The notes beneath the pieces are model-generated. The model ran no database searches. It was not told where the DNA came from and saw nothing but the letters and a program-made list of their open reading frames with translations. From NCBI GenBank assembly GCA_004764695.1, contig SMSO01000035.1, positions 2,926,040 through 2,990,039 of the forward strand: a DNA stretch of 64,000 nucleotides. Reading direction: 5' to 3'. The translations under genes were made by a program, and so were the position numbers. Source of the stretch: Schizochytrium sp. TIO01 (lineage: Eukaryota; Protista; Bigyra: Labyrinthulomycetes). The stretch's first letter is position 1; every line of letters begins with the position of its first letter. Shown one piece after another: positions 8,451-44,888 of this stretch.

Positions 8451-11400
8451 ATGACTACGGCATACAAAATTGAGGACATCACAGAAGCCACCACGAAGAT
8501 AAAGTAAGTGCACGATGGAGAAGGGAGGAGACAGAAGAAGGAGGCATCGCGTTATCGATGTCTTGTAGTAGTCAGCTTTGTAGAAAAAGAATAGTTTTGA
8601 ACTAGTAGTGGCACTAATGAAGAAGTTGGAAATGGCATATACTTACTCTCACTTGTTCACAAACAAACAAACAAACACAGTCTTGGTGGGAAAAGAATTG
8701 GTCGTGAGGGCGCAAAGGCCGTCGCAAAGGCACTCGAGGGATGCAAGAACCTTCAAGAATTGTCGTACGTTTGTGGAATCATCCACGAGGGAAAGCTATC
8801 GTAATAGTCAGGACCAAGCTTTTTCTTTCTTGGTTTTTAGTGCTTGGTGTTTGTAGTACTGCTGGTACACTACCTAAAGTAGTTTACGTAGTTGGGTACG
8901 CAAAGAAAGGCAAAGAAGTCTTTTCTTTTTTACAAAGAGAAGAAGGAAATCTATATAATTTGATACGCAGCAGCAGCAGCAGAAGAAGAAGAGCTGATTG
9001 CTTTTTATTGTGCGGAAAAACAAAACAAAACAGGATCAACTGACTGGACCTGTCTTTCCTGACAACGAATGAACAAAACAAACTTATTCATTTATACTCA
9101 CAGTCTTTTCAACAACAACATTGGCGATGAGGGGACAAAGGCCGTCGCAAAGTCACTCGAGGGATGCAAGAACCTTCGAACTTTAAAGTACGTTTGTGGA
9201 ATCATCCACGAGGGAAAGCTATCGTAATAGTCAGGACCAAGCTTTTTCTTTCTTTCTTTTGAGTGCTTGGTGTTTGTAGTTCTGCTGGTACACTACCTAA
9301 GTAGTTTACGTAGTTGGGTACGCAAAGAAAGGCAAAGAAGTCTTTTCTTTTTTACAAAGAGAAGAACGAAATCTATATAATTTGATAGGCAGCAGCAGCA
9401 GCAGCAGAAGATGAAGAAGAGCTGATTGCTTTTTATTGTGAGGAAAGATAAAACAAAACAGGATCAACTGACTGGACCTGTCTTTCCTGACAATGAATGA
9501 ACAAAACAAACTTATTCATTTATACTCACAGTCTTCAGTATAACAACATTGGCTCAGAGGGCGCAAAGGCCGTCGCAAAGGCACTCGAGGGATGCAAGAA
9601 CCTTCAACGATTAGAGTACGTTTGTGGAATCATCCACAAGGGAAAGCTATCGTCATAGTCAGGACCAAGCTTTTTCTTTCTTTCTTTTTAGTGCTTGGTG
9701 TTTGTAGTTCTGCTGGTACACTACCTAAGTAGTTTACGTAGTTGGGTACGCAAAGAAAGGCAAAGAAGTCTTTTCTTTTTTACAAAGAGAAGAACGAAAT
9801 CTATATAATTTGATAGGCAGCAGCAGCAGCAGCAGAAGATGAAGAAGAGCTGATTGCTTTTTATTGTGAGGAAAGATAAAACAAAACAGGATCAACTGAC
9901 TGGACCTGTCTTTCCTGACAATGAATGAACAAAACAAACTTATTCATTTATACTCACAGTCTTCAGTATAACAACATTGGCTCAGAGGGCGCAAAGGCCG
10001 TCGCAAAGGCACTCGAGGGATGCAAGAACCTTCAACGATTAGAGTACGTTTGTGGAATCATCCACAAGGGAAAGCTATCGTCATAGTCAGGACCAAGCTT
10101 TTTCTTTCTTTCTTTTTAGTGCTTGGTGTTTGTAGTACTGCTGGTACACTACCTATGTAGTTTACGTAGTTGGGTACGCAAAGAAAGGCAAAGAAGTCTT
10201 TTCTTTTTTACAAAGAGAAGAAGGAAATCTATATAATTTGATAGGCAGCAGCAGCAGCAGAAGAAGAAGAGGTGATTGCTTTTTATTGTGAGGAAAAGCA
10301 AAACAAAATAGGATCAACTGACTGGACCTGTCTTTCCTGACAACGAATGAACAAAACAAACTTATTCATTTATACTCACAGTCTTGATGGGAACAACATT
10401 GGCGATGAGGGCGCAAAGGCCGTCGCAAAGGCACTCGAGGGATGCAAGAACCTGACTTATCTGAAGTACGTTTGTGGAATCATCCACGAGGGAAAGCTAT
10501 CATAATAGTCAGGACCAAGCCTTTTCTTTCTTTCTTTTTAGTGCTTGGTGTTTGTAGTACTGCTGGTACACTACCTAAGTAGTTTACGTAGTTGGGTACG
10601 CAAAGAAAGGCAAAGAAATTTTATTTTTTTACAAAGAGAAGAAGGAAATCTATAGAAGTTGATAGGCAGCAGCAGCAGCAGAAGAAGAAGAGCTGGTTGC
10701 TTTTTATTGTGAGGAAAAACAAAACAAAACAGGATCAACTGACTGGACCTGTCTTTCCTGACAACGAATGAACAAAACAAACTTATTCATTTATACTCAC
10801 AGTCTTGGTGGAAACAACATTCGCTCGGAGGGCGCAAAGGCCGTCGCAAAGGCACTCGAGGGATGCAAGAACCTGACTTATCTGAAGTACGTTTGTGGAA
10901 TCATCCACGAGGGAAAGCTATCGTAATAGTCAGGACCAAGCTTTTTCTTTCTTTCTTTTCAGTGCTTGGTGTTTGTAGTACTGCTGGTACACTACTTAAG
11001 TAGTTTACTTAGTTGGGTACGCAAAGAAAGGCAAAGAAGTCTTTTCTTTTTTACAAAGAGAAGAAGGAAATCTATATAATTTGATACGCAGCAGCAGCAG
11101 CAGAAAAAGAAGAGATGATTGCTTTTTATTGTGGGGAAATATGAAACAAAACAAGATCAACTGACTGGACCTGTCTTTCCTGACAACCAATGAAAAACAA
11201 ACTTATTCATTTTTACTCACAGTATTGAGAGCAACAACATTGGCTCAGAGGGCGCAAAGGCCGTCGCGAAGTCTCTGCACCAAGCATGTCCTTCTGTTCG
11301 AATCCAGTAAGTTCCGTTCCCTCTGCTTCTGGTCCTAGCTTTCGCAGAGCCTTGTCATCTATGGTTCTCTCCATGTCTCCATGGACTTGCGAGGCGGTCT

Positions 11401-14400
11401 TTAGATGCGTTAATCGTGCTTCTAACAAACGCTCTTGTTCTCTTTCATTCGTGTATTCACATTCGTTACAAAACGCAGCTATGACAGCTTTCGTGGAACC
11501 CCTAAAGAATTGTTCGAAAGGGTGTGTTCTCCTGGAGAGGATATTTACTCCTCATCAGAGACCGATTTCTGTGCCTCGAAGAGTGAGCAAGATGGCATAT
11601 ATGGGTAAGTTCATGCGTTTTTTTGTTTGGGATCGTGTGATCATTCATTCCACAAATTGTGTTGTTGAGATATTTTGGAGATCCTAACTTTTTTGCTTTT
11701 GCCTCTGCTGGTTCTCTCTGTGTCTCCATAGACTTGCGAAGCTATCTTTAGATGCGGTCATCGTTATTCTATCAAGTACTGTTATTCTCTTTCGTTCGTT
11801 TTTTTATTCGTTTACAAGACGCAGTCTCTATGATGCATATTTGTCTTTTAAAGAATTGTTCGAAAGGGTGCGTTCTCCTGGAGAGAACATATCTGGGTAA
11901 GTTCATGCGTTTTTTGTTAGGGATCGTGTGATCATTCATTCCACAAATTGTGTTGTTGAGATATTTTGGAGATCCTAACTTTTGCTTCTGCCTCTGTTGC
12001 TGCTTCAAATGTCTTCACTTTGCTCGTTTGTTTACGTCTTCTTGTCCACCTCAGAGAACGGCCGGATGGAGGGAGCGTGAGTTTCGCTGATGTGGTGCAG
12101 CTTGCCAAAAAAGTCTCGGACTTGCGCGCGGACCCAGGCGGGGTCAGAGAAAACTCCCTGCAGACTGGGATTGCCTTGCTTGAGGAATTCGTAGGACCGG
12201 CGATCCAGGGCTACTTTGGCCAAGTGAAGTTGCAACAGCTTTCCGCTGACATCAAGAACTCCAAAGAGGGTCTTGACGCACTACAAGGCCAGATTCGTGC
12301 AAGCTCTGCTGATGACTTGTCCAGCCTCATCGAAAAGCGGAACGCCGAACGAAGTCGCCTGCATTCGCTTTTGCAGGTTGTGTACCCATGGGTTCGCGCA
12401 AAACTTTGCGAAAGTGATGAAGATATAGGGCGAGAGTTCAAAGTGAAAGTCGAAAGTTTGGTAGATCATCTAAATATCAAACATGCGCCAGTCACGGAAG
12501 AGACCAGCACAGATGACTTTAAACACTGCCAAGAACTCGTTGTTCAGGCTGTCAAATGCGTCGAAGAGTATAAGAGGAGTGGAGAAGGCCAATCCAACAA
12601 CATTGGTGAACGAAGCCAACAAGCTGTAAAGCGCGTCATCTCTCGATTGTCTGAGCTGAAGCTTGGTGATGGATTATTGGTTGCCCTGAGGACACCGGAG
12701 CAGGCCATGGAGCTAAAACCGGAGTTGTCTGAACTTGAGCGTGCTCTTCAAGAAGAAATCGAAGCTCTACAAGGAGATATACTTCGTGCCCAATTGTCCG
12801 AAATACTTTGCGCAATAAGTGTAACATTTGCTCGATTTGAAGGATATTCTAAAAGTGCTGCGTTGAATGAAGCGAGCAAGTGCGCACCAGAAGAGCTCTC
12901 TGGACTGTATGACTATGTAGTACTGGGTTTGAAAGAACCTTCTGTCTCAGATGTTGAAGCATTATACCAGAAACTCGACAAGTCAAGGAAAGCCACAGAA
13001 AGATTGAAAATCGCCGAAGCAGAACTAGTGGCTGAGGACCTGGATGAGGAAGATCAAGCATATTTTAGAAATAGAATGAAAAACCAAGAGCTCATTCTCT
13101 CTCAAGGCAACCCTATCGACCTTAGCAAAGCTTTTCGTCATAAGCTTGCTGAGACTCTGCAACACGCGCAGGAACATTATCCAGAGTTGCTGCAAGATAG
13201 AGCCTGGCTGGAAAGGCTTCACGTAAGTGCAGAGGGTGTTTTTGAAGTAGCATGTTCTGACCTTTGGTTGACGAATGTCACAGCCGCGGACTTCAAGCCT
13301 GTCCGCGAACCCCTTGCTTCCAGAGGTGGCAAGAGAGTACAAAAGGTTCTTGACAACGTTGGTAAAACTATGGTTTTGAAACAATTTCAACTCGGCCATT
13401 CGAGCCAACACAAAATATTTTACAGGCAAGCTGCAAATATGGGAAACGTGGTGTCTCAGCACGTGATACGTATCACTGGCGCTTTTGTGGATACCTCTAA
13501 TGGAGAACCGCGTGGATGTATCCTCATGCCTTTCTACGAGCAAGGTGACCTTGCCAAGTGGATTGAGAGTCATCCTAACGAAGGCAAAGCAGTGCGCGAC
13601 CGACTTGCTATGGGCCTGCTTATCGGTGTGGCGGATTTGCATACCCATGGCATTGTGCATTGTGATATCAAACCAGAAAACATTTTTCTCACAAGCAACG
13701 GGACACCATTGATCGGCGACTTTGACGGCATCAAGGTTGCAGACTACACTGCAACTTACACATCACTCCAGGCAACGCCACGGTACGTTGCCCCCGAGTT
13801 GCAGAATGGGCCTGTAGATAGGTTTGAAACAGCGATGGATATGTACTCTGTGGGCATAAGCTTAAAGGAGCTGTATCCTACTGAGCGAACCGCTGCAATG
13901 CAGAAACTTATCGATGCTCTTACAGCAACAGACCCTGGCCAGCGTCCAACTGCTCACCAAGCACTCCAACATGAAGCTTTTGGAGCTCCTAAGATCCCTG
14001 TCAAGATATGTCTAGTATGCATGGAGGAGCATCTGCTTTCCGAGGGCACGAGCTGCGAGGAGGGAGACTTCCTTTGCAGAGACTGTATCAAATCTGCAGT
14101 AGAAGCGGCGGCACAGCCACTTGCTAACGTAAGAGTGGATGCTGATGGAACGATGACATGTATGAAACCTGAATGTGGGGGAAGAATATCAGGTCAAGAA
14201 ATCACTCGTCTTGCACCAACAGCTTTGAATCATCTTTTGTTGATTGCGAAGATGAAGGCAGAAAATGAAGCAGCAGTTTGGGCGGAGAAGGAGATTCAAA
14301 GGCGCATAGCAGAAGTTTTGCGTGCAGATGAACAGAATCGCGACGCACAACGGCATTTACTCCATATTCAAGAGAAGATCTTGAGCACATGTTGTCCGAA

Positions 14401-14743
14401 CTGTAAGGCATATGTACACGATTTTGCCGGTTGCTGCGCTGTAAAGTGTGGTACTGATACTTGTGGTCATCACTTCTGCGCTTGGTGTCTTGAGTTTAGT
14501 TCTCAGAATTCACGAGCTTGTCATGCTCATGTGAGAACTTGCTTGAAAAAGCTTGGGCAAGATCCATTTTTTCCTGATTCATTTCAGCAGGTTCGTGAGG
14601 CGTGGCAGTTGCTCCGCGCAGAACGTCTGCGTGAGTACTGGAATGCACAAATTCAGGATAGAAATCTTCGACTCGTTCTGAGAGAGTTATTGTCACCTTT
14701 GCTAACACCAGATATTGTTGGCGCAAACTTTAGATTGGAATAA
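8451..14743 (+). CDS. LRR - helical linker - Ser/Thr protein kinase - RING/RBR-like protein, copy B1 (7 LRR exons, ~1175 aa spliced)
   Basis: Exon 1 is 8451-8503 (MTTAYKIEDITEATTKI, then GTAAGT). 84-nt LRR exons lie at 8681-8764, 9104-9187, 9532-9615, 9960-10043, 10382-10465, 10803-10886 and 11223-11306. Probable phase-2 linker exons are 11479-11604 and 11825-11896, and the terminal exon is 12055-14743. All junctions are phase 2 and in frame. Confidence 0.85.
8681..11306 (+). repeat. Tandem array of 420-428 bp units (84-nt LRR exon + ~340-nt intron), 7 exons
   Basis: Recurring tactcacag|TCTT...GGCGCAAAGGCCGTCGCAAAGGCACTCGAGGGATGCAAGAACC...|gtacgtttgtgg. Confidence 0.95.
12055..14743 (+). CDS. 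Terminal exon of B1: helical/coiled region, protein kinase (~13300-13985), RING-like (~14008-14177) and RING2/Rcat(IBR)-like (~14389-14543) domains
   Basis: Lies within ORF 11966-14743. Kinase motifs: VLK, HCDIKPEN, GDFDG, ATPRYVAPE, DMYSVG. Cys motifs: CLVC...C...LCRDC...CMKPEC and CPNC...DFAGCCAVKC...CGHHFCAWC. Acceptor is cacctcag|A. Confidence 0.9.
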
Positions 14744-16192
14744 ACTAATCGAATTTTAAATGATTATCTTTTGCTTAAGCGCCGTTGACTAGAATGCAAA
14801 AAAGCAACTGCTCTCTGCCCATAGACTTTGACAATGGGCCTTGTCAGCAGTTCCTGAATATTAATTCTAACTTTTATTTTCCTTCATTTCTCTACCTACA
14901 CTATCTCTTGGTGATCGCCTCACGCTAACTTGCAATATACCTCTAAGAGGGAAACACACATATTTAAGCAACATGTGCTGAGAGTGTCAACGAAAGTGTT
15001 AAGCGGTTTACTTCTCCCACGAGATCTCTGTGATGGTGTCCCACTGAAGATTGTTTTGTTCTACAAACACACATTAAGGATTCTGTTCGAGTCAGTTTCA
15101 AAGCAGTTGAGACACATGTGAGTACACAGCCAAACAGAATGCGCACAACCGTGCTTGGCTAGTCTCTTCATTTGCTTTTATACGCACTTCTCGTTATAGT
15201 AAACTTTGTAACACGAGATATTATTAACTCATTAGGAATAGTAGCGCCCAGTAACTTTCTTTCTTGTCTCCAGCTTGGGGAATTATCTCGTTGATGTTTC
15301 CTAGGAAATACACAAATGCAAGCTTAATCCTGAACGTAGAACATCTTGCATCTGTGACAGGAAGAATCTTCAGAAGGAGAGAGTCGAACTATATCGGTGA
15401 GATTCGGACACGCAAAGGAACATATTGAAGTGAACAAGTGTGACCTTTCCTTCTACCACAGAACGGCAAACCATGCAAGAAACAACAAGTATACCAGTTT
15501 CAATTTTTTTTATTTTTTTTTTTTCTGACCTGCATTAACTCAATAATGCGGAACACCACAACTAAAGAACATTGTAAAGATTCATTTTTTTTCTAAATGT
15601 ATTAATTTAAAACTGTGCAAACTAGACTAAATCAACTACTTATAACCATTAACCTATGCAAGACAGCTTTAGAATTCTCAATCATGGCGGATAACTTCGT
15701 GCTAGGGAAAGAAATATGAAGCATTTCTTGACTATGCACACGATTTGTAATATGCACAGAATAAATAATCGAATGCTCGAAATGCGTGTGTTTCAACTCA
15801 ACCAGGAGGGTAGAGGACCTACAGCTTTACTAATCTTATCGAATTGCCTTGCAAACTCATTTTGAGGCTTGCTTTGTGCCCTTCCCTCCCTGACATAGAC
15901 GCATCACTATGTTGACTGACGCTTCAACATGATCTGGTCATGAAGGTGTTCCTTTGAGCCTTGCGAAGTCATGGCGTCAGTTTTCCTTCTCACTAACTTT
16001 ACTGTTGCTCGGCATCAGCTTGTATTTCAACAAAGGCAAATAAAGCACTCTATAACAGAAAGCCTGCAAGGAAGCTTTTGCCTTCATGGCAGGCCAGAGA
16101 GACTCGAAGGAAAGCTACTTTCTGCGTTGTTTCTTTTTATAGAATGAAATAAAGGTCTGGAGTATAAATGCTAGAGTTCGACTTACTTGTTC

Positions 16193-16311
16193 ACATTCGA
16201 TCATACCACGCGGGTAACACCTCATCTCATTCGCACTGAGAAGTAAAGTCGCGTAGGGCCGGGTCAGTAGTATGATAGGGGACTGCATGCGAAGCCCCGG
16301 TGTTGAATGTT
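16193..16311 (+). rRNA. 5S rRNA
   Basis: Same sequence as 7105-7223, with a poly-T terminator. Confidence 0.93.
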
Positions 16312-19300
16312 TTTTACCTCTTTTCCCCCCCAAACCAATCATTTTTGGTACTTTGATATAAATCACTAATAATTGAGCAGTGATATCAGTTTTCCACACA
16401 AAGCGAGGTTAATCTGTTCATTTTTGACATACGTACTGGTGTCGTTGGCTTACTATCAACATTCCTGAATAATAAAAATGATAGGGAATCACAAAATTGA
16501 TGTATTCTTTTTTTTGCAATGCATTCTAAATTAGGCACAAAGAGATAAATAAACAAAATCACTTTGCATTAATGAATGATCTACTAGGGAAAGTCAGGGG
16601 CAGCAGTTGCATTCTCTGTAAAGCACGTTTGCAGAAACAAATGAAAACTACGCATAAAAATATCGGTAAATTGAATAGAAGATTCACAGGAAAAGGTCAC
16701 ACTTGCTTTTAAAAGGGCTCCTGCTTACCACAACTCTCAATCGCGAGATGTATATTGTTCATTTCAAACGCCATTCGCTGGCCCGAGAATTCATTTTTCA
16801 TCTTCTTCGTTTGCCCTGGTGGCGGACTCTCAAGGTAACAGTGCAGTAGTTGTAAGTTGAAGATACCCTTCAGCAAATTTAAGGAAATTTAATCTTCAGA
16901 AGCTTCCCTGAAGACATCCATCAATTACTACATTTCGAAACAAAGGCGGGTACCAGGGGCCCTGGCTTCAATCTACAGCCCCCTAAATTGATCTGGGATT
17001 CTGGAGGAGCAACTCTAGCCACAACGTGATTTACTATATTCTGCTTTTTATTTTATTGGTACTTTAGCATATATCTGCTACAAGGAACGTATTAACTAGC
17101 CCAATAAAGCAAAGCCATAACTTAACAATATAATTCAACGTTGTAATTGTTGCAACAGGACAATGCCAAAATATACTAGAGCTGATTGCTTTTCGTGCAC
17201 AGTGCGAAAGACACCGAGATTATTACACTCTATCACTATATGAAGCACTAGCGTATACATATGAACCAATTAAATGCACTACGTAATTCATGCCTGATTT
17301 AAGCATTTGTAATGGTGACTGCGGTGATTGTTTGTGCAGTGAAAGGTATTACACCATGAAGGAACCAAAATCAAAAACCTTATTTTCAAGTCTCTTATTG
17401 GCTTTTATCCAGGCCAAAATGTGCAGAGCATAAGAGTAAAAACCTCACAACCTCCAGGTCTAAAACCACTCGATATGGTGATATATTGATTTTTTTGTCA
17501 CCTATGAAGTCGCTCGTATTTGTAAAATAATTGTTTATTACTCTAGTGAGCAGCGAATTTCACAAACCCATAACCAAGAGCAAAACAGTCATATACTGAG
17601 ATGGACCAAGCTTATGAATCAGCATCGATTACTTTTTCCAGAGAACATGTATTTCCCTTGATGGCAGACCGGAGACCTTGCTTGTCAAAGCGGCGATGGT
17701 GGCACGAGCTCGAGCCTCGTCGAAGTCTCGCAGAGTCAAAGTTGCTGCGATCTGATGTCACAGCATCGTTCGTTTGGCGGCCAAGCAGAGGGAACCGGAA
17801 GCTACGTAGCCTCCAAGCGCAGGTAATCAACCCAGCATCTTTGCTAAAGCCAAGCGAACCACCCACTAAGGCCTACCTGCGCACGGCCGGAGCGCCTAGA
17901 GCAGTTTGATTCAAGTTCTGATGCTTTTCCTTTTGATCTTCCCACACTTCGTTAAAGAATAAAAATACAGAGTATAGTTTAATCTATCTAGAGCATTAGT
18001 TGATGATTTGTATAACTAGGACTAACAGAACCTTAGCGTCCTTGCAATTCTACTGTTGAGAACTGTTGAGAACTATGATTGCAAGCAACTACTTTACCTA
18101 CACTAACGTCAGAACAAAATCTTGTATGTTTTGATTGCGCAGCATCTTGCTACTGCTCTTCTCTGAGTTGGAGAGGGGCTCTCTTCTTTTCTTTCGAAGC
18201 TGTACGATCACTGCAAACTTTGAAGTATTTAAGCTATGCGTATTAAATGCAGTGAATAATAAGTGCCTTCTCCCGAGCACATCACTGTCAAAGATTAGGT
18301 TGCAAATCATTCGATAGCTGCTTCTTTATATATTTTATGGTGTGATCTCACAAAATGCGTTTTTGTTTTTTTCCTTTATGAGCTCCTCTTTGTGGCATCT
18401 CCAGATTGACAAATGACCTTTCTTAGCCATGAAAAAGGCTAGTTACAAAATAAGCACATTCGTAATTCTTTGCGCAATTCCTTATTGCACTGTTTTCCCC
18501 TTCAAAACAGGTTTTCTATTTCGATTTTTTCGAAAAGCAAAGGGTAATTTGATGTGCAGGCACGAAGCGTACTTACCATACATTTGACTAGTATTTCCGG
18601 TTGCCAGAAGACTTGCTTCGAAATTGCTGCAGCATATTGTATTTCGAACATTCTGGAATCTATTATAAATATTTTGAACCTGTGTCGGAGGAGGGATGGG
18701 AGGATAGCTGGAAAGCAGGTACAGTGTCTAAAATGAAAATTAACTCTAGCGTCATCGGTAATTTAACTCCATTTTAAACACCTATTCTCTGTTATAGTTA
18801 GCTTCTCACACTAAGATAGAAGAAAAAAAGAGGCATTTTTACCCTGCCTCAGGGTAGAACGGGAATAGAACCCGTTTTATATACATGAACCAAAGCTACC
18901 CACATGAAAACGGGAAGGAGGGACCAAGATCCAAAAATCCTCCTTCTATGTAGGTTCTGTCGCTTGCAGCAAGCTCCATGACATCGTTTTTAATCAATAT
19001 TCTTATGCACACAGGCATCCTGTTAAATTCTGCTATAACACTGGAGAACCTTTGTATAAAGTACATGATTGTTGATTCAGAGTCTTATGAAAATTTGTAT
19101 TACTTGCCTTCATCGGACGTACATCACTTGAGACAAATTTAAATTGAGCTTGCCTCCAGCAAAAGCAACCCTAATTTTTTTTTTAACGAGACTCAGCAAA
19201 ACGAAAGCTTGACTTTGCTAAGGTTGCCCAAAACATTCGCAAAATGGCCCGATATTTTTTTTTGATAGATGAGGTCATACAAAAAGTCTACTCTCTAAGG

Positions 19301-21630
19301 AAGCACAATTTTGATAATTTCTTTGCACAACAGAGCTCTCCCGTCGAACAAATCTACATCATCACCATACTACAGAGTGCTCTGAGCATGGAACCATACT
19401 GCAGAGTGCTCTGAGCACGGAACTTTGAAAGACAAACGTGATTCATAGAATGCCATGCTGCAGCAAACAGCGTTGAACAGATTTATAACCAATTTGAAAA
19501 TGCTTAACGAGCTTTAAAAATATGGGTTTCGGAAAGTTCACACATCAATGATTCATTTGGATTGAGCTTCTACACAGCAAGTCGGCTTGTCACCTGTCTA
19601 AGTAGTTGCGCCTATACTATTGTGCAACCCTTTATCTGGAAATGCTCTATTTTGTACAGCAGCAAACTCGTTAAGACTCGTTAAGTCTCTAAAAGATCTC
19701 ATTCAGGCTACATCAACAATTTCTGTCAATTTAAAATTTGCCATTGCAGATACTTTTACTCTTTTAAACTTATAAAGATTAAAAACAAAAATGTATTAAA
19801 ACAGAAAATAAAATTGTTTTGTTTTAGTTAAACTTTTACTTTAGGTTTAACATCTTTAACTTTTCAAAATAAAAAGTTAAACAATGAGTTTTTGGTGTTT
19901 TGTTTGTTTTTAGATCGTACCTTGAACTATTTTAAAACTGCATCCATTCCATACTTATCAGTACTCTCACTGATAGAGAAAAGTAAAACATGTCTTGTAG
20001 ATTAGTTTAGTGGTAAGAAATGTTTTACAAGGAGTTAAATTATTATGGCAAGTGGGATGAAGTTACCGAGGCTGGAAGATCTCACACAGTGAATTCCGAC
20101 CTTTGCGAATATATTTCAGTCCTTCACGAGAAGCAAATGAAAATTGTCTTGTTCTTGCAAGAATCATATGAAAGGACCACTGAGGGATGGTGCTTCATTG
20201 AATTCCGGCAATAAATTTAGACTATCTGAATGTTCATTTACTTTCCAAGCTTGAAGCAAAACAATAACATAATCGATCAAACGCTAGTGGACGTTTTTGT
20301 TCTTGTACATAACGTATTATTATGCTCAAAATAAACTAAACAAAGCATTCATTATGCATTAGTAACACCTTGTGTATAATTTGTGATGTAATTGTTGATC
20401 GTGTAGTTAATGACCGTAAGATGAGAACAAGCAATCCACGCAAATACGGTGTCTCCATGCCAAGAGGTACCGTGAAGAATACGTTGCAGGAGAACATATG
20501 TATTTGACGTTGAAAAGCGTTGCAATGAATACTCTCGATGGGATACGGCATCTTGATATGCTTCACCAATTCATTTTGCTATTAATAGAATGATTAGTGT
20601 TAGAAACCACTTTAAATAATAACAAAAATTAATTTAAACTAAAACAAAGACATTTATTGAAATAAGTTTTTAAATATAATTGAAACTAGAAATTTTGATT
20701 TAATTTGTCTTAATATATTTCTTCAATTAAATTATTTTTAAAAGTATCGTTATCATCTAAATATACAATTATTCCAAATCGAAGAGTATAATGACAATGT
20801 GGTGCTCCATAAAGCGTCGCGTCCAATTATACAATACACAGTAACCATTGGGCAGCGTGCGGCCAACAAATCTGAGAGGCCATTTCGATTATGACGCTTC
20901 TATTTTAGATCGCAAAGGTCATAGCCTCATGAGTATCTTCATGTTTCAATTTTTCAAAGCAGCATGCATTCCTTTCTACTACACACCTTCATCACCATCG
21001 TTGCTCCACATATTGTCGTAACAGATATCTTGAAATACCTGACATTGCAGTAAACTTGAGGTAAGGCCAACTTCACCGTATTGGGTGACTTTCTCTTTCC
21101 ACTTCAGCAATTTGACACATCTGTAATGACCAATTTATGAATGTACGAATCGTTTTATTCAGACCCCGCTCTTCGGTTTTAAAATGAAGATCAATTACAT
21201 TCTTTTAAGTTAGAAGTTTCTTTTCTTCACTTTCATTTTATTAAATTAAGTTTACCTCTTTTCTTTTAAAAAAAATGAGAATTCTATTATAATATTTGTT
21301 TTAATTTACAAGAAAAGGGGTATTAAATAAACCTTCTTCAAGTGAAAAACTTTATTATATTTTAAGAGAACTCTCAACCAATCATCGTGCAGTGGCTCGC
21401 TTCTTTACGCCCACGTGCCTTGTAGAGGGCAAAAGGGTCGTTAGCTAAAATGGACTTCAAAACTTTTCATCCTTGTGCAAATTATTTATGCCAATATGTA
21501 AATTTGATTTTGCTTAAAGTAACGGTCAGCTTGAAACTTTTGTGCAAGAAAGTTTCCCCAAGGGTCAGGGCAGAGTGTGAGGAAAACATATTTTTGACAG
21601 CAACAAGTCTCGCTTTCAACTTAGCAAGTT

Positions 21631-21704
21631 GTCTCCGTGGCCAAGTTGGATAAGGTGCCTGACTACGAATCAGGAGATCGTGGGTTCAAGTCCCGCCGGA
21701 GATT
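21631..21704 (+). tRNA. tRNA-Arg(ACG)
   Basis: Cloverleaf GTCTCCG...cctga-ct-ACG-aa-tcagg...GGTTCAAGTCC...CGGAGAT. Confidence 0.93.
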
Positions 21705-22482
21705 CTGGAGCCCAAAGTGTATTTCTTTTTGTTTTAGAGAAAGTAACTGTGGGATCAGATGCTTGACCTGCGTTTTAGTTTTGCCAAAGCAAAACCACGG
21801 AAACTCGTACAGGAAGTAAATAAATTCCTGTTTATATCCTTGCGAAATTTGTTTGTAAGCTAATCGATTCTCCATGTTCTCTAAAAATGCTATGGTTTTA
21901 AACAGCACAGCACTACTTTTACAGCAAATCATCAAGACCTTACTTTGAAACTGTGTACACTCAAACGTATAACTGTACATTAGTCTAATTCAAGCATCCG
22001 AGGGAAAACAGAACCGATTATTCAAATTGTAGAAATCAAAATCATAGAATTATTATGATAAAAATGAAGAGGCCTTCAACAAGTGCCAAGGAAAGAACTG
22101 CCAAAGAACGTTTAGCTTAATCAGCGATGCCTTGCAGAAGTGTAGATCAAACCGGAGATACTTGTGTAGTACATAGAACTCTAAACCCCAACGTAATCAG
22201 CCAGACTGTAGAGTGTCTTTCCGAATACTGTCTCCTCTCCTTTGGTTTGCAAGCTAGCAAGCATCGAAGGATAGCTTTTCCATTTTTGAAACATTCATTA
22301 AAAACATTCGATACATCAGTTGTCAGTATGAAAAAAGAATCATTAAAAAATGAACTGAACTTTCATTTATTGAACTTGTATATCAAGTACCCTCTTTTAA
22401 GTAAAATACACCGTAAGATATGAAGCGTATCAGTATGAAAAGAGACCAACAAAAATGTTAACCTCACTAATCTTGAGGTGAG

Positions 22483-22553
22483 TGCCTTCGCGCGGAATCG
22501 AACCACGGTCGTCACGGCCACAACGTGACGTTCTACCATTGAACTACGAAAGC
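22483..22553 (-). tRNA. tRNA-His(GTG)
   Basis: Reverse complement reads GCTTTCG...tcacg-tt-GTG-gc-cgtga...GGTTCGATTCC...CGAAGGCA. Confidence 0.92.
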
Positions 22554-22644
22554 GTTTGACTTTACTCCAGAAGGATTCGTAAAACCACATTTTGAATTCA
22601 TTATCAACAGAATCACAGCCTTTTAGCTTCAAAAACGCATTTAC

Positions 22645-22700
22645 TACTGTGAGTGGACCACGGCCTAAAGGTGGCACATTAACCGATCGGTCATCACAGC
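22645..22700 (-). pseudogene. tRNA-Leu pseudogene (variable arm and T-arm deleted)
   Basis: Matches both ends of the intact tRNA-Leu(AAG) at 61292-61370 but lacks ~23 nt and has substitutions in the anticodon arm. Confidence 0.8.
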
Positions 22701-23692
22701 TCAATGGACTATTGTCGGCCCAGGGGTACGACCTTAACATCAGTCAAGCATCAGCAAACACAACTTCCTTTGGCACAATTAATTATCATTTCACGGAATT
22801 AAATTACGACTGGTTTGTGGGGTTTATTTCCAGCTGAAGTCAGACCAAGGTTTGGTAAGAATATCAGATATAACTCTCATGATAAAATAGGATCTCCGTT
22901 GAGGCGATCGAGCCCAACCCAAGAGCAGCACGCACTATGGTTGGGCTAACTGCGATTCTTAAGAAAGAATACCAGTGTTTTGACGCTCCTAATTCCCTTG
23001 GCATAAAAAACTTGCTTTGATTCTCAACACACAAAACAAACTTCAGATAAAACCAGTTTCCTCTGATTCAAGAACATTAGATAAATAAAATTAAGAATTT
23101 TCAAGATCAGCAGGGTTATAAGCTGCCAGAACGAGCAGCATATCCAATGCATAAGGTTAATACCCATATTGCTTTGCCTATCCATGCGTTGGACCTTTCT
23201 TAGCTTGCTCAGTTCAAAAAGAAAAACTTTTCAAAGCTTATCCTAGCTATCGCCGGGGGTCACTCTAAGAAAATACTTCAAAAACCCATTCTTCTAACAA
23301 ACAAAAAAAGGGAGTTCCACCAGTCTCTCACCTACTCTGTATAGAGTATAGCAAGAACTAATGAAACTCCCTTTCTACTTCATCACCATCGCGTTTCTTT
23401 ATCTAAACTCTATCCCTCCTAATCACCTTCCCGATAATATACTATCCAACTCCAAGGCCCCACCTTTCCATACCAAACTCTCCATAATCAACTTCTCACA
23501 TCATCTAGTTCTCATTTCAAATTAGCCTATTGTTTCATCTAACAACCGACTAACCTTCCTCGTTCCCTGCCCTTATATGATATCCAAGAAGAACTTCATC
23601 CCCAAATCATCTCAAATCACACCTCCTCTGGGAGTCACCAACAATAAAATAATAAAAATAGAGAAAAGAAAAATATACCTATCAAAGGCATA

Positions 23693-24070: not shown

Positions 24071-24126
<56 letters not shown>

Positions 24127-24171: not shown

Positions 24172-24205
<34 letters not shown>

Positions 24206-36479: not shown

Positions 36480-39400
36480 ATGACTGTGGCAAAAAGCATT
36501 AAGGGCATCACAGAAGATACGACAGAGATAGAGTAAGTTCACGATGGAAAGAGGAGATGACAGAAGAAGGAGGCATCGCGTCGTCGATGTGTTGTAGTAG
36601 TCAGCTTTAGTTTTATACTAGTAGTGGTACTCATGAAGAAGTTGGAAATGGCATATACTTACTCTCACTTGTTCACTAACAAATAAACAAACACAGTCTT
36701 GGTTGGAAACAGATTGGTCGTAAGGGCGCAAAGGCCGTCGCAAAGGCACTCGAGGGATGCAAGAACCTTCAAGAATTGTGGTACGTTTGTGGAATCATCA
36801 ACGAGGGAAAGCTATCGTAATAGTCAGGACCAAGCTTTTTCTTTCTTTCTTCTTAGTGCTTGGTGTTTGTAGTACTGCTGGTACACTACCTACGTAGTTC
36901 ACGTAGTTGGGTACTTTAGAAAGGCAAAGAAGTCTTTTCTTTTTTACAAAGACAAGAAGGAAATCTATATAATTTGATACGCAGCAGCAGCAGAAGAAGA
37001 AGAGCTGATTGCTTTTTATTGTGAGGAAAAAAAAAAAAAAAAAAAAAAACAGGATCAACTGACTGGAGCTGTCTTTCCTGACAACAACGAATGAACAAAA
37101 CAAACTTATTCATTTATACTCACAGTCTTTCTGGCAACAACATTGGCGATGAGGGCGCAAAGGCCGTCGCAAAGGCACTCGAGGGATGCAAGAACCTTCA
37201 AACTGTAAAGTACGTTTGTGGAGTCATCAACGAGGGAAAGCTATCGTAATAGGCAGGACCAAGCTTTTTCTTTCTTTCTTTTTAGTGCTTGGTGTTTGTA
37301 GTACTGCTGGTACACTACCTAAGTAGTTTACATAGTTGGGTACGCAAAGAAAGGCAAAGAAAGGCAAAGAAGTTTTTTCTTTTTTACAAAGAGAAGAAAG
37401 AAATCTATATAATTTGATAGGCAGCAGCAACAGCAGAAGAAGAAGTGATTGCTTTTTAATGTGAAGAAAAACAAAACAAAACAAAACAGGATCAACTGAC
37501 TGGACCTGTCTTTCCTGACAACGAATGAACAAAACAAACTTATTTATTTATACTCACAGTCTTAACAACAACAAGATTGGCTATGAGGGCGCAAAGGCCG
37601 TCGCAAAGGCACTCGAGGGATGCAAGAACCTTCAAACTGTAAAGTACGTTTGTGGAATCATCCGCGAGGGAAAGCTATCGTAATAGGCAGGACCAAGCTT
37701 TTTCTTTCTTTCTTTTTAGTGCTTGGTGTTTGTAGTAATGCTGGTACACTACCTACGTAGTTTACGTAGTTGGGTACGCAAAGAAAGGCAAAGAAGTCTT
37801 TTTTTTTTTACAAAGAGAAGAAGGAAATTTATATAATTTGATAGGCAGCAGCAGCAGAAGAAGAAGAGCTGATTGCGTTTTATTGTGAGGAAAAACAAAA
37901 CAAAACAGGATCAACTGACTGGACCTGGCTTTCCTGACAACGAATGAACAAAACAAACTTATTCATTTATACTCGCAGTCTTGGTTGGAACAACATTGGC
38001 GATGAGGGCGCAAAGGCCGTCGCAAAGGCACTCGAGGGATGCAAGAACCTTCAAACTGTAAAGTACGTTTGTGGAATCATCCGCGAGGGAAAGCTATCGT
38101 AATAGGCAGGACCAAGCTTTTTCTTTCTTTCTTTTTAGTGCTTGGTGTTTGTAGTAATGCTGGTACACTACCTACGTAGTTTACGTAGTTGGGTACGCAA
38201 AGAAAGGCAAAGAAGTCTTTTCTTTTGTACAAAGAGAAGAAGGAAACCTATATAATTTGATAGGCGGCAGCAGCAGAAGAAGAAGAGCTGATTGCTTTTT
38301 ATTGTGAGGAAAAACAAAACAAAACAGGATCAACTGACTGGACCTGTCTTTCCTGACAACGAATGAACAAAACAAACTTATTCATTTATACTCACAGTCT
38401 TCATGGGAACAACATTGACGATGAGGGCGCAAAGGTCGTCGCAAAGGCACTCGAGGGATGCAAGAACCTGACTTATCTGAAGTACGTTTGTGGAATCATC
38501 CACGAGGAAAAGCTATCGTAATAGGCAGGACCAAGCTTTTTCTTTCTTTCTTTTTAATGCTTGGTGTTTGTAGTACTGCTGGTACACTACCTAAGTAGTT
38601 TACGTAGTTGGGTACGCAAAGAAAGGCAAAGAAGTCTTTTCTTTTTTACAAAGAGAAGAAGGAAATCTATATAATTTGATAGGCAGCAGCAACAGCAGCA
38701 AAAGAAGAAGAAGAGCTGATTGCTTTTTATTGTGAGGAAAAACAAAACAAAACAGGATCAACTGACTAGACCTGTCTTTCCTGACAACGAATGAACAAAA
38801 CAAACTTATTCATTCATACTCACAGTCTTTGCAACAACAACATTGGCTCGGAGGGCGCAAAGGCCGTCGCAAAGGCACTCGAGGGATGCAAGAACCTTCA
38901 AACTTTACAGTACGTTTGTGGAATCATCCACGAGGGAAAGCGATCGTAATAGGCAGGACCAAGCTTTTTCTTTCTTTCTTTTTAGTGCTTGGTGTTTGTA
39001 GTACTGCTGGTACACTACCTAAGTAGTTTACGTAGTTGGGTACGCAAAGAAAGGCAAAGAAGTCCTTTCTTTTTTACAAAGAGAAGAAGGAAGTCTATAT
39101 AATTTGATAGGCAGCAGAAGCAGCAGAAGAAGAGGTGATTGCTTTTTATTGTGAGGAAAAACAAAACAAAACAGGATCAACTGACTGGACCTGTCTTTCC
39201 TGACAACGAATGAACAAAACAAACTTATTCATTTATACTCACAGTCTTTCTGGGAACAAGATTGGCTCGGATGGCGCAAAGGCCGTTGCAAAGGCACTCG
39301 AGGGATGCAAGAACCTTCAAACTTTAGAGTACGTTTGTGGAATCATCCACGAGGGAAAGCTATCGTAATAGGCAGGACCAAGCTTTTTCTTTCTTTCTTT

Positions 39401-42400
39401 TTAGTGCTTGGTGTTTGTAGTACTGCTGGTACACTACCTAAGTAGTGTACGTAGTTGGGTACGCAAAGAAAGGCAAAGAAGTCTTTTCTTTTGTACAAAG
39501 AGAAGAAGGAAATCTATATAATTTGATAGGCGGCAGCAGCAGAAGAAGAAGAGCTGATTGCTTTTTATTGTGAGGAAAAACAAAACAAAACAGGATCAAC
39601 TGACTGGACCTGTCTTTCCTGACAACGAATGAACAAAACAAACTTATTCATTTATACTCACAGTCTTCATGGGAACAACATTGACGATGAGGGCGCAAAG
39701 GTCGTCGCAAAGGCACTCGAGGGATGCAAGAACCTGACTTATCTGAAGTACGTTTGTGGAATCATCCACGAGGGAAAGCTATCGTAATAGTCAGGACCAA
39801 GCTTTTTCTTTCTTTCTTTTGAGTGCTTGGTGTTTGTAGTACTGCTGGTACACTACCTAAGTAGTTTACGTAGTTGGGTACGCAAAGAGAGGCAAAGGAG
39901 TCTTTTCTTTTTTACAAAGAGAAGAAGGAAATCTTTATAATTTGATAGGCAGCAGCAGCAGCAGCAGAAGAAGAAGAGCTGATTGCTTTTTATTGTGAGG
40001 AAAAACAAAACAAAACAGGATCAACTGACTGGACCTGTCTTTCCTGACAACGAATGAACAAAACAAACTTATTCATTTATACTCACAGTCTTTTTAGCAA
40101 TAACATTGGCTCGGAGGGCGCAAAGGCCGTCGCAAAGGCACTCGAGCGATGCAAGAACCTTCAACAATTGCAGTACGTTTGTGGAATCATCCACGAGGGA
40201 AAGCTATCGTAATAGTCAGGACCAAGCTTTTTCTTTCTTTCTTTTTAGTGCTTGGTGTTTATAGTACTGCTGGTACACTACCTACGTAGTTTACGTAGTT
40301 GAGTACTTTAGAAAGGCAAAGAACTATTTTCTTTTTTAGAAAGAGAAGAAGGAAGGGCAAAAAAGGGAATCTGTATAATTTGATAGGCTGCAGCAGCAGA
40401 AGAAACCGTGATTGCTTTTTACTGTGAAGAAAAAGAAAACAAAACAGGATCAACTGACTGGACCTGTCTTTCCTGACAACGAATGAACAAAACAAACTTA
40501 TTCATTTATACTCACAGTCTTCATGGGAACAACATTGGCGATGAGGGCGCAAAGGCCGTCGCAAAGGCACTCGAGGGATGCAAGAACCTGACTTATCTAA
40601 GGTACGTTTGTGGAATCATCCACGAGGGAAAGCTATCGTAACAGGCAGGACCAAGCTTTTTCTTTCTTTCTTTTTAGTGCTTGGTGTTTGTAGTACTGCT
40701 GGTACACTACTTAAGTAGTTTACGTAGTTGGGTACGCAAAGAAAGGCAAAGAAGTCTTTTCTTTTTTACAAAGAGAAGATGGAAATCTATATAATTTGAT
40801 AGGCAGCAGCAGCAGAAGAAGAAGAGGTGATTGCTTTTTATTGTGAGGAAAAACAAAACAAAACAGGATCAACTGACTGGACCTGTCTTTCCTGACAACA
40901 ACGAATGAACAAAACAAACTTATTCATTTATACTCACAGTCTTTCTAGCAACAAGATTGGCTCGGATGGCGCAAAGGCCGTTGCAAAGGCACTCGAGGGA
41001 TGCAAGAACCTTCAAACTTTAGAGTACGTTTGTGGAATCATCCACGAGGGAAAGCTATCGTAATAGGCAGGACCAAGCTTTTTCTTTCTTTCTTTTTAGT
41101 GCTTGGTGTTTGTAGTACTGCTGGTACACTACCTAAGTAGTTTACATAGTTGGGTACGCAAAGAAAGGCAAAGAAAGGCAAAGAAGTTTTTTCTTTTTTA
41201 CAAAGAGAAGAAAGAAATCTATATAATTTGATACGCAGCAGCAGCAGAAGAAGAAGAGCTGATTGCTTTTTATTGTGAGGAAATATGAAACAAAACAAGA
41301 TCAACTGACTGGACCTGTCTTTCCTGACAACCAATGAAAAACAAACTTATTCATTTATACTCACAGTCTTGAGAGCAACAACATTGGCTCAGAGGGCGCA
41401 AAGGCCGTCGCGAAGTCTCTGCACAAAGCATGTCCTTCTGTTCGAGTCCAGTAAGTTCCGTTCCCTCTGCTTCTGGTCCTAGCTTTCGCAGAGCCTTGTC
41501 ATCTATGGTTCTCTCCAAGTCTCCATGGACTTGCGAAGCGGTCTTTAGATGCGTTAATCGTGCTTCTAACAAACGCTCTTATTCTCTTTCATTCGTGTAT
41601 TCACATGCGTTACAAAACGCAGCTATGACAGCTTTCGTGGAACCCCTAAAGAATTGCTCGAAAGGGTGTGTTCTCCTGGAGAGGATATTTACTCCTCATC
41701 AGAGACCGATTTCTGTGCCTCGAAGAGCAAGCAAGATGGCATATATGGGTAAGTTCATGCGTTTTTTTTTTGTTTGGGATCGTGTGATCATTCATTCCAC
41801 AAATTGTGTTGTTGAGGTATTTTGAAGATCCTAACTTTTGCTTTTGCCTCTGCTGGTTCTCTCTGTGTCTCCATAGACTTGCGAAGCTATCTTTAGATAC
41901 GGTCATCGTTATTCTATCAATTACTGTTATTCTCTTTCGTTCGTTTTTTTATTCGTTTACAAGACGCATTCTCTATGATGCATATTTGTCTTTTAAAGAA
42001 TTGTTCGAAAGGGTGCGTTCTCCTGGAGAGAACATATCTGGGTAAGTTCATGCGTTTTTTGTTAGGGATAGTGTGATCATTCATTCCACAAATTGTGTTG
42101 TTGAGATATTTTGGAGATCCTAACTTTTGCTTCTGCCTCTGTTGCTGCTTCAAATGTCTTCACTTTGCTCGTTTGTTTACGTCTTCTTGTTCACCTCAGA
42201 GAACGGCCGGATGGAGCGAGCGTGAGTTTCGCTGATGTGGTGCAGCTTGCCAAAAAAGTCTCGGACTTGCGCGCGGACCCAGACGGGGTCAGAGAAAACT
42301 CCCTGCAGACTGGGATTGCCTTGCTTGAGGAATTCGTAGGACCGGCGATCCAGGGCTACTTTGGCCAAGTGAAGTTGCGACAGCTTTCCGCTGACATCAA

Positions 42401-44888
42401 GAACTCCAAAGAGGGTCTTGACGCACTACAAGGCCAGATTCGTGCAAGCTCTGGTGATGGCTTGCCCAGCCTCATCGAAAAGCGGAACGCCGAACGAAGT
42501 CGCCTGCATTCGCTTTTGCAGGTTGTGTACCCATGGGTTCGCGCAAAACTTTGCGAAAGTGATGAAGATATAGGGCGAGAATTCAAAGTGAGAGTCGAAA
42601 GTTTGGTAGATCATCTAAATATCAAACCTGCGCCAGTCACGGAAGAGACCAGCACAGATGACTTTAAACACTGCCAAGAACTCGTTGTTCAGGCTGTCAA
42701 ATGCGTCGAAGAGTATAAGAGGAGTGGAGAAGGACAATCCAACAACATTGGTGAACGAAGCCAACAAGCTGTAAAGCGCGTTATCTCTCGATTGTCTGAG
42801 CTGAAGCTTGGTGATGGATTATTGGTTGCCCTGAGGACACCGGAGCAGGCCATGGAGCTAAAACCGGAGTTGTCTGAACTTGAGCGTGCTCTTCAAGAAG
42901 AAATCGAAGCTCTACAAGGAGATATACTTCGTGCCCAATTGTCCGAAATACTTTGCGCAATAAGTGTAACATTTGCTCGATTTGAAGGATATTCTAAAAG
43001 TGCTGCGTTAAATGAAGCGAGCAAGTGCGCACCAGAAGAGCTCTCTGGACTGTATGACTATTTAGGACTGGGTTTGAAAGAACCTTCTGTCTCAGATGTT
43101 GAAGAATTATACCAGAAACTTGACAAGTCGAGGATAGCCACAGAAATTTTGAAGAGAGCCAAAGAAGAACTCGAAATAGAGGACATGAATGAGGAAGATC
43201 AAGCATATTTTAGAAATAGAATGAAAAACCAAGAGCTCATTCTCTCTCAAGACAACCCTATCGACCTTAGCAAAGCTTTTCGTCATAAGCTTGCTGAGAC
43301 TCTGCAACACGCGCAGGAACATTATCCAGAGTTGCTGCAAGATAGAGCCTGGCTGGAAAGGCTTCACGTAAGTGCAGAGGGTGTTTTTGAAGTAGCATGT
43401 TCTGACCTTTGGTTGACGAATGTCACAGTCGCGGACTTCAAGCCTGTTGGCGAACCCCTTGCTTCCAGAGGTGGCAAGAGAGTACAAAAGGTTCTTGACA
43501 ACGTTGGTAAAACTATTGTTTTGAAACAATTTCAACTCGGCCATTCGAGCCAACACAAAATATTTTACAGGCAAGCTGCAAATATGGGAAACGTGGTGTC
43601 TCAGCACGTGATACGTATCACTGGCGCTTTTGTGGATACTTCTAATGGAGAACCGCGTGGCTGTATCCTCATGCCTTTCTACGAGCAAGGTGACCTTGCC
43701 AAGTGGATTGAGCGTCATCCTAACGAAGGCAAAGCAGTGCGCGACCGACTTGCTATGGGCCTGCTTATCGGTGTGGCGGATTTGCATACCCATGGCATTG
43801 TGCATTGTGATATCAAACCAGAAAACATTTTTCTCACAAGCAACGGGACACCATTGATCGGCGACTTTGACGGCATCAAGGTTGCAGACTACACTGCAAC
43901 TTACACATCACTCCAGGCAACGCCACGGTACGTTGCCCCCGAGTTGCAGAATGGGCCTGTAGATAGGTTTGAAACAGCGATGGACATGTACTCTGTGGGC
44001 ATAAGCTTAAAGGAGCTGTATCCTACTGAGCGAACCGCTGCAATGCAGGCACTTATCGATGCTCTTACAGCAACAGACCCTGGCCAGCGTCCAACTGCTC
44101 ACCAAGCACTCCAACATGAAGCTTTTGGAGCTCCTAAGATCCCTGTCAAGATATGTCTAGTATGCATGGAGGAGCATCTGCTTTCCGAGGGCACAAGCTG
44201 CGAGGAGGGAGACTTCCTTTGCAGAGACTGTATCAAATCTGCAGTAGAAGCGGCGTCACAGCCACTTGCTAACGTAAGAGTGGATGCTGATGGAACGATG
44301 GCATGCATGAAACCCGAATGTGGGGGAAGAATATCAGGTCAAGAAATCACTCGTCTTGCACCAACAGCTTTGAATCATCTTTTGTTGATTGCGAAGATGA
44401 AGGCAGAAAATGAAGCAGCAGTTTGGGCGGAGAAGGAGATCCAAAGGCGCATAGCAGAAGTTTTGCGTGCAGATGAACAGAATCGCGACGCACAACGGCA
44501 TTTACTTCATATTCAAGAGAAGATCTTGAGCACGAGTTGTCCGAACTGTAAGGCATATGTACACGATTTTGCCGGTTGCTGCGCTGTAAAGTGTGGTAAT
44601 GATACTTGTGGTCATCACTTCTGCGCTTGGTGTCTTGAGTTTAGTTCTCAGAATTCACGAGCTTGTCATGCTCATGTGAGAACCTGCTTGAAAAAGCTTG
44701 GGCAAGATCCATTTTTTCCTGATTCATTTGAGCAGGTTCGTGAGGCGTGGCAGTTGCTCCGCGCAGAACGTCTGCGTGAGTACTGGAATGCACAAATTCA
44801 GGATAGAAATCTTCGACTCGTTCTGAGAGAGTTTTTGTCACCTTTGCTAACACCAGATATCGTTGGCGCAAACTTTAGATTGGAATAA
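36480..44888 (+). CDS. LRR - helical linker - Ser/Thr protein kinase - RING/RBR-like protein, copy B2 (12 LRR exons, ~1290-1350 aa spliced)
   Basis: Exon 1 is 36480-36532 (MTVAKSIKGITEDTTEI). 84-nt exons lie at 36697-36780, 37126-37209, 37560-37643, 37979-38062, 38398-38481, 38826-38909, 39245-39328, 39664-39747, 40089-40172, 40518-40601, 40940-41023 and 41367-41450. Linker exons are 41623-41748 and possibly 41877-42041, and the terminal exon is 42200-44888. Confidence 0.85.
36697..41450 (+). repeat. Tandem array of 419-434 bp units (84-nt LRR exon + intron), 12 exons
   Basis: Same repeat unit as 8681-11306. Confidence 0.95.
42200..44888 (+). CDS. Terminal exon of B2: kinase + RING + RING2/IBR-like
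   Basis: Lies within ORF 42111-44888 and has the same motifs as B1, with about 32 amino-acid differences from B1 by eye. Confidence 0.9.

Follow-up and report, generated by a model that had tools for sequence, protein, structure and literature searches.

Tandem repeats between the 5S genes of a labyrinthulomycete read as one-LRR exon arrays of a kinase and RBR-like gene family with a probable recognition role

The 64,000-nucleotide stretch of Schizochytrium sp. TIO01 analysed here (the window; G000:C34:2926040–2990039 in a 64-Mb, 37-contig genome) contains two genes, which we refer to as B1 and B2, whose leucine-rich repeat (LRR) exons lie in tandem repeat arrays within the ribosomal DNA (rDNA). 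Rfam searches of the window placed two rDNA operons on the minus strand, ~30 kb apart, and four 5S genes on the plus strand alongside tRNA genes. Tandem Repeats Finder describes the B1 array as 428 bp × 6.1 copies (8706–11271) and the B2 array as 419 bp × 11.1 copies (36723–41415). The arrays lie within two ~30-kb rDNA units and each is flanked by 5S genes of the same strand, located by Rfam at 7105–7223 (RF00001, 96.5 bits) and 16193–16311 for B1, and at 35107–35225 and 48172–48290 for B2 (all on the plus strand). This arrangement of a gene between two 5S genes is repeated at at least 14 other loci, and the copies sit between same-strand 5S genes wherever the list of 5S genes is complete.

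Repeats of this kind have been published from Aurantiochytrium limacinum as Group 5 LORE-TEARS, which consist of ~5 copies of a ~421-bp unit between consecutive 5S genes in subtelomeric rDNA (bioRxiv 10.1101/2023.06.15.545109; Collier et al. 2023, Curr Biol) and which were presented as non-coding spacers having no GenBank similarity (bioRxiv 10.1101/2023.06.15.545109). The B1/B2 array has both the ~421-bp tandem unit and the location between two consecutive 5S genes, and is the published Group 5 LORE-TEARS; the genome also matches the Aurantiochytrium transcripts of MMETSP0960/0961. Where we differ is in reading the units as the exon–intron arrays of genes and not as spacers. The words ‘leucine’ and ‘kinase’ are absent from the text of the LORE-TEARS paper (bioRxiv 10.1101/2023.06.15.545109), and our literature searches found no paper giving these repeats a coding reading. 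An earlier reading of this DNA (referred to here as the original prediction) had named LORE-TEARS as the work against which novelty should be judged, and relative to that paper the coding reading is new.

Each repeat unit is made up of one exon (AG|84 nt|GT) encoding a single 28-residue ribonuclease-inhibitor-type LRR, plus an intron of ~340 nt. A script which required 84 bases between AG and GT, an LRR-like motif and a frame open from base two found exactly seven such exons in B1 and twelve in B2, and recovered no exon from the reversed sequence or from any of 20 shuffles. All 19 units (19/19) retain the exon length and phase, the splice sites (AG/GT) and the LRR motif. B1 begins with a 53-nt first exon at 8451–8503 (ATG plus 17 codons and two bases, with a GTAAGT donor), which is homologous to the first exon of the gene for P0020, a transcript-derived protein described below, and equally long. 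This is followed by the N-terminal cap LRR exon of 84 nt (8681–8764), five internal LRR exons at 9104–10886 (starting at 9104, 9532, 9960, 10382 and 10803, with introns of ~340 nt), and the C-terminal cap LRR exon with its GTAAGT donor (11223–11306), the last being recognised by paralog comparison as well as by the script. B2 has the corresponding 53-nt first exon with ATG (36480–36532), and the script located its N-terminal cap exon (36697–36780), ten internal 84-nt LRR exons (37126–41023) and C-terminal cap exon (41367–41450), all, like those of B1, on the plus strand.

The LRR exons share a phase in which a codon spanning a junction has its first two bases at the end of one exon and its third at the start of the next. 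Any exon can thus be joined to any other with the frame kept, and a stop can never arise at the split codon between LRR exons. Their acceptors read ...ACTCACAG and their donors are GTACGT, with GTAAGT found after the last LRR exon. B1 and B2 have in common a first and a last LRR exon that are conserved by position, and the last-exon type with its SLHKACPSV motif was present in 30/30 paralogs for which the upstream flank was read. No internal exon peptide is common to B1 and B2, and exons 3 and 4 of B1 do not differ from each other. It should be noted that exons searched singly scored only 16–22 bits, with 17–22 bits for the internal exons of B1, against the Pfam LRR_6 cut-off of 23.4, one exon fitting part of the model only; the motif and period are exact in the exon array, and the spliced relatives P0020 and P0022 carry LRR_6. 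The original prediction of one LRR per 84-nt exon (seven in B1 and twelve in B2), of cap exons conserved by position and of internal exons that are not shared between the two genes is borne out by these comparisons. We also observed a short (CAG)n(AAG)n tract in every array intron (e.g. 8960–8990), and Rfam gave no matches inside the LRR introns.

Downstream of the last LRR exon is a large exon of 895 codons (12055–14743 in B1 and 42200–44888 in B2, both on the plus strand). A direct splice between the two (CA|A) is in frame and the large-exon acceptor (ctcag|A) is identical in 29/29 paralogs, with indels seen upstream of this acceptor but none within the exon in the paralog alignment. The interval also contains a conserved, open and phase-compatible segment with a CAG acceptor and a GTAAGT donor, which is 126 nt long in B1 (11479–11604) and B2 (41623–41748) and about 195 nt in many paralogs, and which is homologous to coding sequence of P0020. 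This candidate linker exon probably belongs to the mRNA, where it would join the last LRR exon to the kinase exon. The direct splice of the original prediction is upheld as far as the frame and the acceptor are concerned, but a conserved linker exon probably intervenes. B1 has a second, shorter linker-like candidate exon of 72 nt on the plus strand (11825–11896), which is an internal duplicate. We note that the intervals 11286–12054 and 41430–42199 each hold such an internal duplication, giving two linker-like open segments with splice sites, and that the corresponding stretch of two close paralogs, L002 and L005, forms a single long open frame.

In B1 the large exon encodes a helical region (to ~13330), a kinase (~13340–13876), and a tail with a RING1-like part (~14009–14176) and an Rcat-like part (~14393–14542) before the stop codon at 14741–14743; the large exon of B2 contains the same four parts. 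A kinase domain had been predicted originally, and in Pfam the large exon matches Pkinase at 100.9 bits against a cut-off of 31.7. The motif HCDIKPEN, which makes this a non-RD kinase, is kept in 29/29 paralogs and DFD in 28/29, and the kinase Lys, HCD, Asn and DFD Asp are present in 28–29 of the 29 copies. The 425 residues ahead of the kinase had no place in the original prediction and are modelled as helices (predicted local distance difference test score, pLDDT, of 80). For this region Pfam produced noise only, Foldseek nothing below E = 0.15, a wide VIA-align search generic helical bundles at best (Z 8.9), and the ESM Atlas no usable match; a likeness to pore-forming toxins among weak Foldseek rows was not significant and is not relied on here. 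Pfam found no ROC-COR GTPase tandem and no NACHT or NB-ARC domain in the large exon, and the helical region is without a specific fold match. No membrane segment was found in the B1/B2 protein, where the maximum 19-residue hydropathy of 1.22 lies inside the kinase and the first exon is polar, and a metagenome scan returned unrelated kinases only.

The 267-residue tail has no Pfam match when searched alone, even at E = 10. An exhaustive HMMER search recovered 1536 tail relatives, and IBR_1, the Pfam model of the in-between-RING (IBR) domain, matches 16/59 of the shorter ones. The alignment of the tail contains two cysteine clusters, the first with the eight conserved ligand positions of a C3HC4 RING and the second with the pattern CPxC...GC...C...C...FCxxC typical of the Rcat domain, including a candidate catalytic-position Cys that is at least 90% conserved. 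An AlphaFold model of the tail (pLDDT 95) was used in a Foldseek search in which the top matches were all ligases of the RING-in-between-RING (RBR) class, with RNF216 first (E = 7.5e-5), and in VIA-align the tail superposed on the RNF216 RING1 over 88 residues (Z 10.8, root-mean-square deviation 2.4 Å), followed by rows that were all RBR RING1 domains. In Hondaea, a dinoflagellate and MMETSP transcripts, the module formed by the kinase plus tail is preceded by repeats of the LRR, ankyrin or WD40 type, and the tail is found without the kinase in an oomycete and in Paulinella.

Evidence that exons of this type are spliced comes from P0020, a 399-residue MMETSP0961 protein whose header names Aurantiochytrium (the organism field reads ‘Auranti...’, and the taxid 87120 in the header, which is that of a fungus, was treated as a header error). 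On the minus strand of L031 (G000:C31, about 8498633–8500777) P0020 aligns as six exons. A 53-nt first exon is followed by four LRR exons of 84 nt, and the last exon comprises the linker and the RING1/Rcat tail. The four LRR exons match the genome without a difference, split codons included. Identity in the last exon is about 94%, with the mismatches lying toward its end, and this may reflect a chimeric assembly or a paralog that was not assembled. The P0020 gene is a kinase-less sister of B1 with first and cap exons of the same kind, and because the protein matches the genome exon for exon, it shows that 84-nt exons are spliced as predicted in the LRR family, albeit in a sister gene and not in B1 or B2 themselves. 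A second transcript, P0022 (MMETSP0960), is complete and combines LRR_6, Pkinase and the same tail; it is 100% identical to the genome over 913 residues from residue 328 on, and since this identity begins only at residue 328, the LRR part must have been spliced on. The Logan proteins P0001–P0003 are 50–59% identical relatives. We note that the P0020 gene, at locus reverse-strand coordinates 1950–4093 of L031 (G000:C31:8492726–8502725), is part of a tandem cluster of four family members, and that this cluster is apparently internal to a 9-Mb contig.

B1 and B2 belong to a family in which the large exon occurs in at least 51 genomic copies with 60–100% identity, 44 of them full-length without a stop and six interrupted by stops or truncated. 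Across 28 copies dN/dS was 0.32 overall, 0.22 for the kinase, 0.28 for the tail and 0.42 for the helical part, ratios that indicate purifying selection on the large exon. Divergent paralogs (60–68% identical) retain the 84-nt exons, their phase and the cap exons, while their introns vary in sequence and length (230–545 nt) and the number of LRR exons varies from four to at least 20. One of these, a 60%-identical paralog on the minus strand of L039 (G000:C35:2429216–2439215), has at least 20 LRR exons, in which five different exons recur together as a higher-order unit of about 2.46 kb, and its array extends beyond the 2429216–2439215 stretch.

Variation among the LRR exons is concentrated at a few positions. 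In an alignment of 17 exon-plus-intron units the mean diversity was 0.046 in introns compared with 0.170 in exons, and columns with a diversity above 0.4 accounted for 20/84 exon positions versus 7/344 intron positions (Fisher p = 3e-10). The higher value in exons is due to codons 2, 3, 8, 25 and 26 plus the split codon, where diversity is 0.47–0.66, while most scaffold codons are invariant. These six variable codons are the x positions of LxxLxLxxNxIGx, and the x positions of the LRR motif generally line the concave binding face. When all pairs were pooled, the proportion of non-synonymous differences (pN) was 0.55 for the six variable codons, and for the other 22 codons pN was 0.04 and the synonymous proportion (pS) 0.12, with an intron distance of 0.045; taking introns as a neutral proxy, the variable codons are ~12-fold more diverse. 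Across paralogs, the last two or three LRR exons were read for 30 copies and complete arrays for nine divergent or broken copies in addition to B1 and B2. The cap and penultimate exons of the 30 differ at the variable positions and hardly elsewhere, even where the large exons are 99% identical. The original prediction of a variable sensor joined to a conserved effector stands, as all internal LRR exons differ between B1 and B2 and the large exons are 96% identical in protein, and so does its expectation of a genome-wide paralogous family with differing arrays.

Taken together, we consider it probable that B1 and B2 are members of a large germline family of protein-coding LRR–kinase–RBR-like genes, most likely acting in innate-immune or other non-self recognition. 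The B1/B2 protein would be cytosolic because no signal peptide or membrane segment is present. Its LRR arc would bind a variable ligand, and binding would relieve autoinhibition of the kinase and E3-like module, in which the kinase perhaps licenses the RBR-like part in cis; the output would then be phosphorylation and/or ubiquitin transfer to the bound target or to a signalling partner. The location between 5S genes in recombining subtelomeric rDNA could supply changes in copy number and repeat number, and selection would keep the LRR contact residues different. The immune role itself is inferred.

A number of observations weigh against this reading. At the six variable codons the synonymous proportion is as high as the non-synonymous, so there is no classical dN/dS above 1 and the case for selection lies in the contrast with the introns and the scaffold codons. 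In the kinase the alpha-C Glu is replaced by Gln and the glycine loop is degenerate, and it may as a result be a pseudokinase. In the tail, the His ligand of RING1 is an Asp in the rDNA-embedded subfamily, the Rcat-like finger is the weaker of the two (Z 4.6 to the C-terminal part of RNF216 in VIA-align), and neither the model nor the alignment contains an IBR between the fingers, where there is a single long helix (residues 93–147, ~60 residues) and no third zinc module. The tail as modelled is an RBR-type RING1 plus an Rcat-like finger, and is RBR-like rather than a full RBR. The RBR (RING/RING2) effector of the original prediction is thus retained in its RING1 and Rcat-like finger, but lacks the IBR and is not recognised directly by Pfam. 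Finally, no transcript of the rDNA-embedded subfamily was found: in a collection of 5.8 billion proteins that includes the MMETSP transcripts of this organism, no protein exceeded 68% identity with the B1 large exon, searched whole and in parts. Expression of the rDNA-embedded copies may be weak or limited to certain conditions, or the copies may be silenced within the chromatin of the subtelomeric rDNA, and we infer the expression of this subfamily from its conservation.

This last result is also what might be expected if the rDNA-embedded copies were silent archives, kept intact by gene conversion with expressed relatives located elsewhere in the genome and acting at most as donors of LRR exons, or were slowly decaying passengers of rDNA concerted evolution. 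More divergent relatives from outside the rDNA are represented in the same collection (P0020, P0173, P0022 and P0029), six of the 51 copies are broken, and chromosome ends tend toward lower gene expression (bioRxiv 10.1101/2023.06.15.545109). Nevertheless, we think this explanation unlikely. Forty-four full-length open copies, diverged by up to 40%, have kept a dN/dS of 0.32, their catalytic and zinc-ligand motifs and their splice sites; gene conversion would need expressed donors of the same subfamily, and none was seen outside the 5S context. Furthermore, transcripts of near-identical multicopy genes assemble poorly, and so absence from a database is weak evidence.

We regard as less likely still the possibility that the family is expressed but uses its LRRs for something other than pathogens, such as self/non-self or mating-type recognition, or the endogenous targeting of a kinase–E3 module (e.g. 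to the nucleolus or chromosome ends). No result ties the B1/B2 family to infection, other protists have the kinase-plus-tail module joined to ankyrin or WD40 repeats as well, and the fixed rDNA/5S position could reflect a function at chromosome ends, where the LORE-TEARS authors proposed that the repeats might serve in maintenance (bioRxiv 10.1101/2023.06.15.545109). However, housekeeping targeting would predict conserved contact residues, and antagonistic co-evolution is usually recognised by hypervariability limited to contact positions, high copy number and turnover by birth and death. The same marks are reported for the LRR families of Ectocarpus and Tetrahymena (PMC3341825; PMC11378527; PMC6564038) and for plant resistance genes. 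We give practically no credence to the repeats being a non-coding satellite with exons that are chance open frames, despite their publication as spacers without database similarity (bioRxiv 10.1101/2023.06.15.545109), since length, phase, AG/GT sites and LRR motif are kept in all 19 units and none of the controls, the exon structure persists in paralogs having introns of other length and sequence, and the sister-gene transcript P0020 splices such exons exactly.

The B1/B2 family can be compared with systems already described. In the LRR-ROCO candidate receptors of Ectocarpus, a stramenopile, each LRR likewise has its own exon, with a length divisible by three; the number of repeats varies, as do the residues of the concave face, and the signalling module is conserved (Zambounis et al. 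2012, PMC3341825; Teng et al. 2024, PMC11378527). The Ectocarpus exons, however, are of 72 nt and encode 24-residue plant-like LRRs joined to a ROC-COR GTPase as the ROCO effector (PMC3341825; PMC11378527), whereas the B1/B2 family has 84-nt exons for 28-residue ribonuclease-inhibitor-type LRRs, a kinase and RBR-like effector, and residence in rDNA. Tetrahymena has LRR genes with 90-bp exons that are concentrated in subtelomeric and pericentromeric regions, with unequal crossing-over as the proposed driver (Xiong et al. 2019, PMC6564038). These too have one LRR per exon and the same split codon (one base at the exon start and two at the end), but the exons differ in length, the organism is a ciliate, and the available part of the source notes no rDNA association or kinase–RBR effector (PMC6564038).

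Compared with the RBR ligases RNF216, Parkin, HOIP, ARIH1/2 and HOIL-1, the B1/B2 tail shares the RING1 fold and the Rcat cysteine pattern, but is without an IBR, has the long interfinger helix and Asp for the RING1 His, and forms one protein with a kinase. Plant LRR receptor kinases of the non-RD type (e.g. Xa21) likewise combine a variable LRR sensor with a signalling module and have a non-RD (HCD) kinase, a kinase type that Dardick and Ronald in 2006, a study cited in PMC6564038, reportedly linked to pattern-recognition receptors. As no signal peptide or membrane segment is present, however, the B1/B2 product is predicted not to be a surface receptor, unlike the plant LRR receptor kinases. 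Animal and plant nucleotide-binding LRR receptors (NLRs) also join an LRR sensor with variable contact residues to a signalling module, but in the absence of NACHT or NB-ARC the B1/B2 product is not an NLR. Lamprey variable lymphocyte receptors (VLRs) are similar in having LRR modules between conserved N- and C-terminal caps and diversity on the concave face. VLR genes are assembled somatically from flanking cassettes, whereas the germline copies of B1 and B2 are already complete and nothing suggests somatic assembly. The B1/B2 family is set apart from these systems by its 84-nt ribonuclease-inhibitor-type repeats, its kinase and RBR-like effector, its residence in the 5S-rDNA, and its identity with repeats published as non-coding.

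If this reading is right, repeats published as non-coding chromosome-end spacers hold at least 50 genes, and the ‘universal subtelomeric rDNA’ architecture of this model thraustochytrid would have to be re-read. The family would be a third independent lineage, after the brown algae and Tetrahymena, with expanded one-LRR-per-exon arrays and variable contact residues, which would strengthen the idea that protists have repeatedly built receptor repertoires from one-LRR exons. No description of the effector combination (helical region, non-RD kinase, and RING1 plus Rcat without IBR) was found in our literature searches. The organism is culturable, has persistent mirusviruses and is served by proteomic (PMC12221091; PMC12606086) and RNA resources, making the hypothesis testable. 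A bolder version, which we offer as a long shot, is that subtelomeric rDNA/5S arrays are a diversity generator for cytosolic LRR sensors, through unequal exchange between ~420-bp units and between chromosome ends together with frame-neutral skipping of any 84-nt exon, so that every cell line would have a large, shifting sensor repertoire, and that a kinase licensing its own RBR-like ligase makes this a new type of innate-immune receptor, possibly one that restrains the resident mirusviruses.

Other features of the window and assembly were also recorded. Repeats of 370 and 393 bp on the minus strand at ~663–6381 are also arrays of 84-nt one-LRR exons, of which 11 were detected; these are of a different sequence type, with the scaffold ...AAALKENRSLTSL, and represent another coding LORE-TEARS class. 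Six more 84-nt LRR exons on the minus strand at ~32122–33538, between the 18S and 5S genes of the second rDNA unit, are divergent and have unequal introns (about 120–340 nt), and belong to an LRR gene and not to a satellite. Several contigs are 7–9 Mb long, compared with the 26 chromosomes of mean ~2.4 Mb given in the preprint (bioRxiv 10.1101/2023.06.15.545109), and rDNA-linked members lie far from contig ends (at C30:5.47 Mb and C31:5.68 Mb, for example). Chromosomes may have been joined end to end in this assembly, or it may be another version. A (CAAG)17 microsatellite is found at 6484–6553. The second rDNA operon is followed by a tRNA cluster (61021–62110), with LRR arrays at the corresponding place in the first unit, and two tRNA matches of 115–121 nt on the minus strand (52847–52961 and 61990–62110) probably contain introns.

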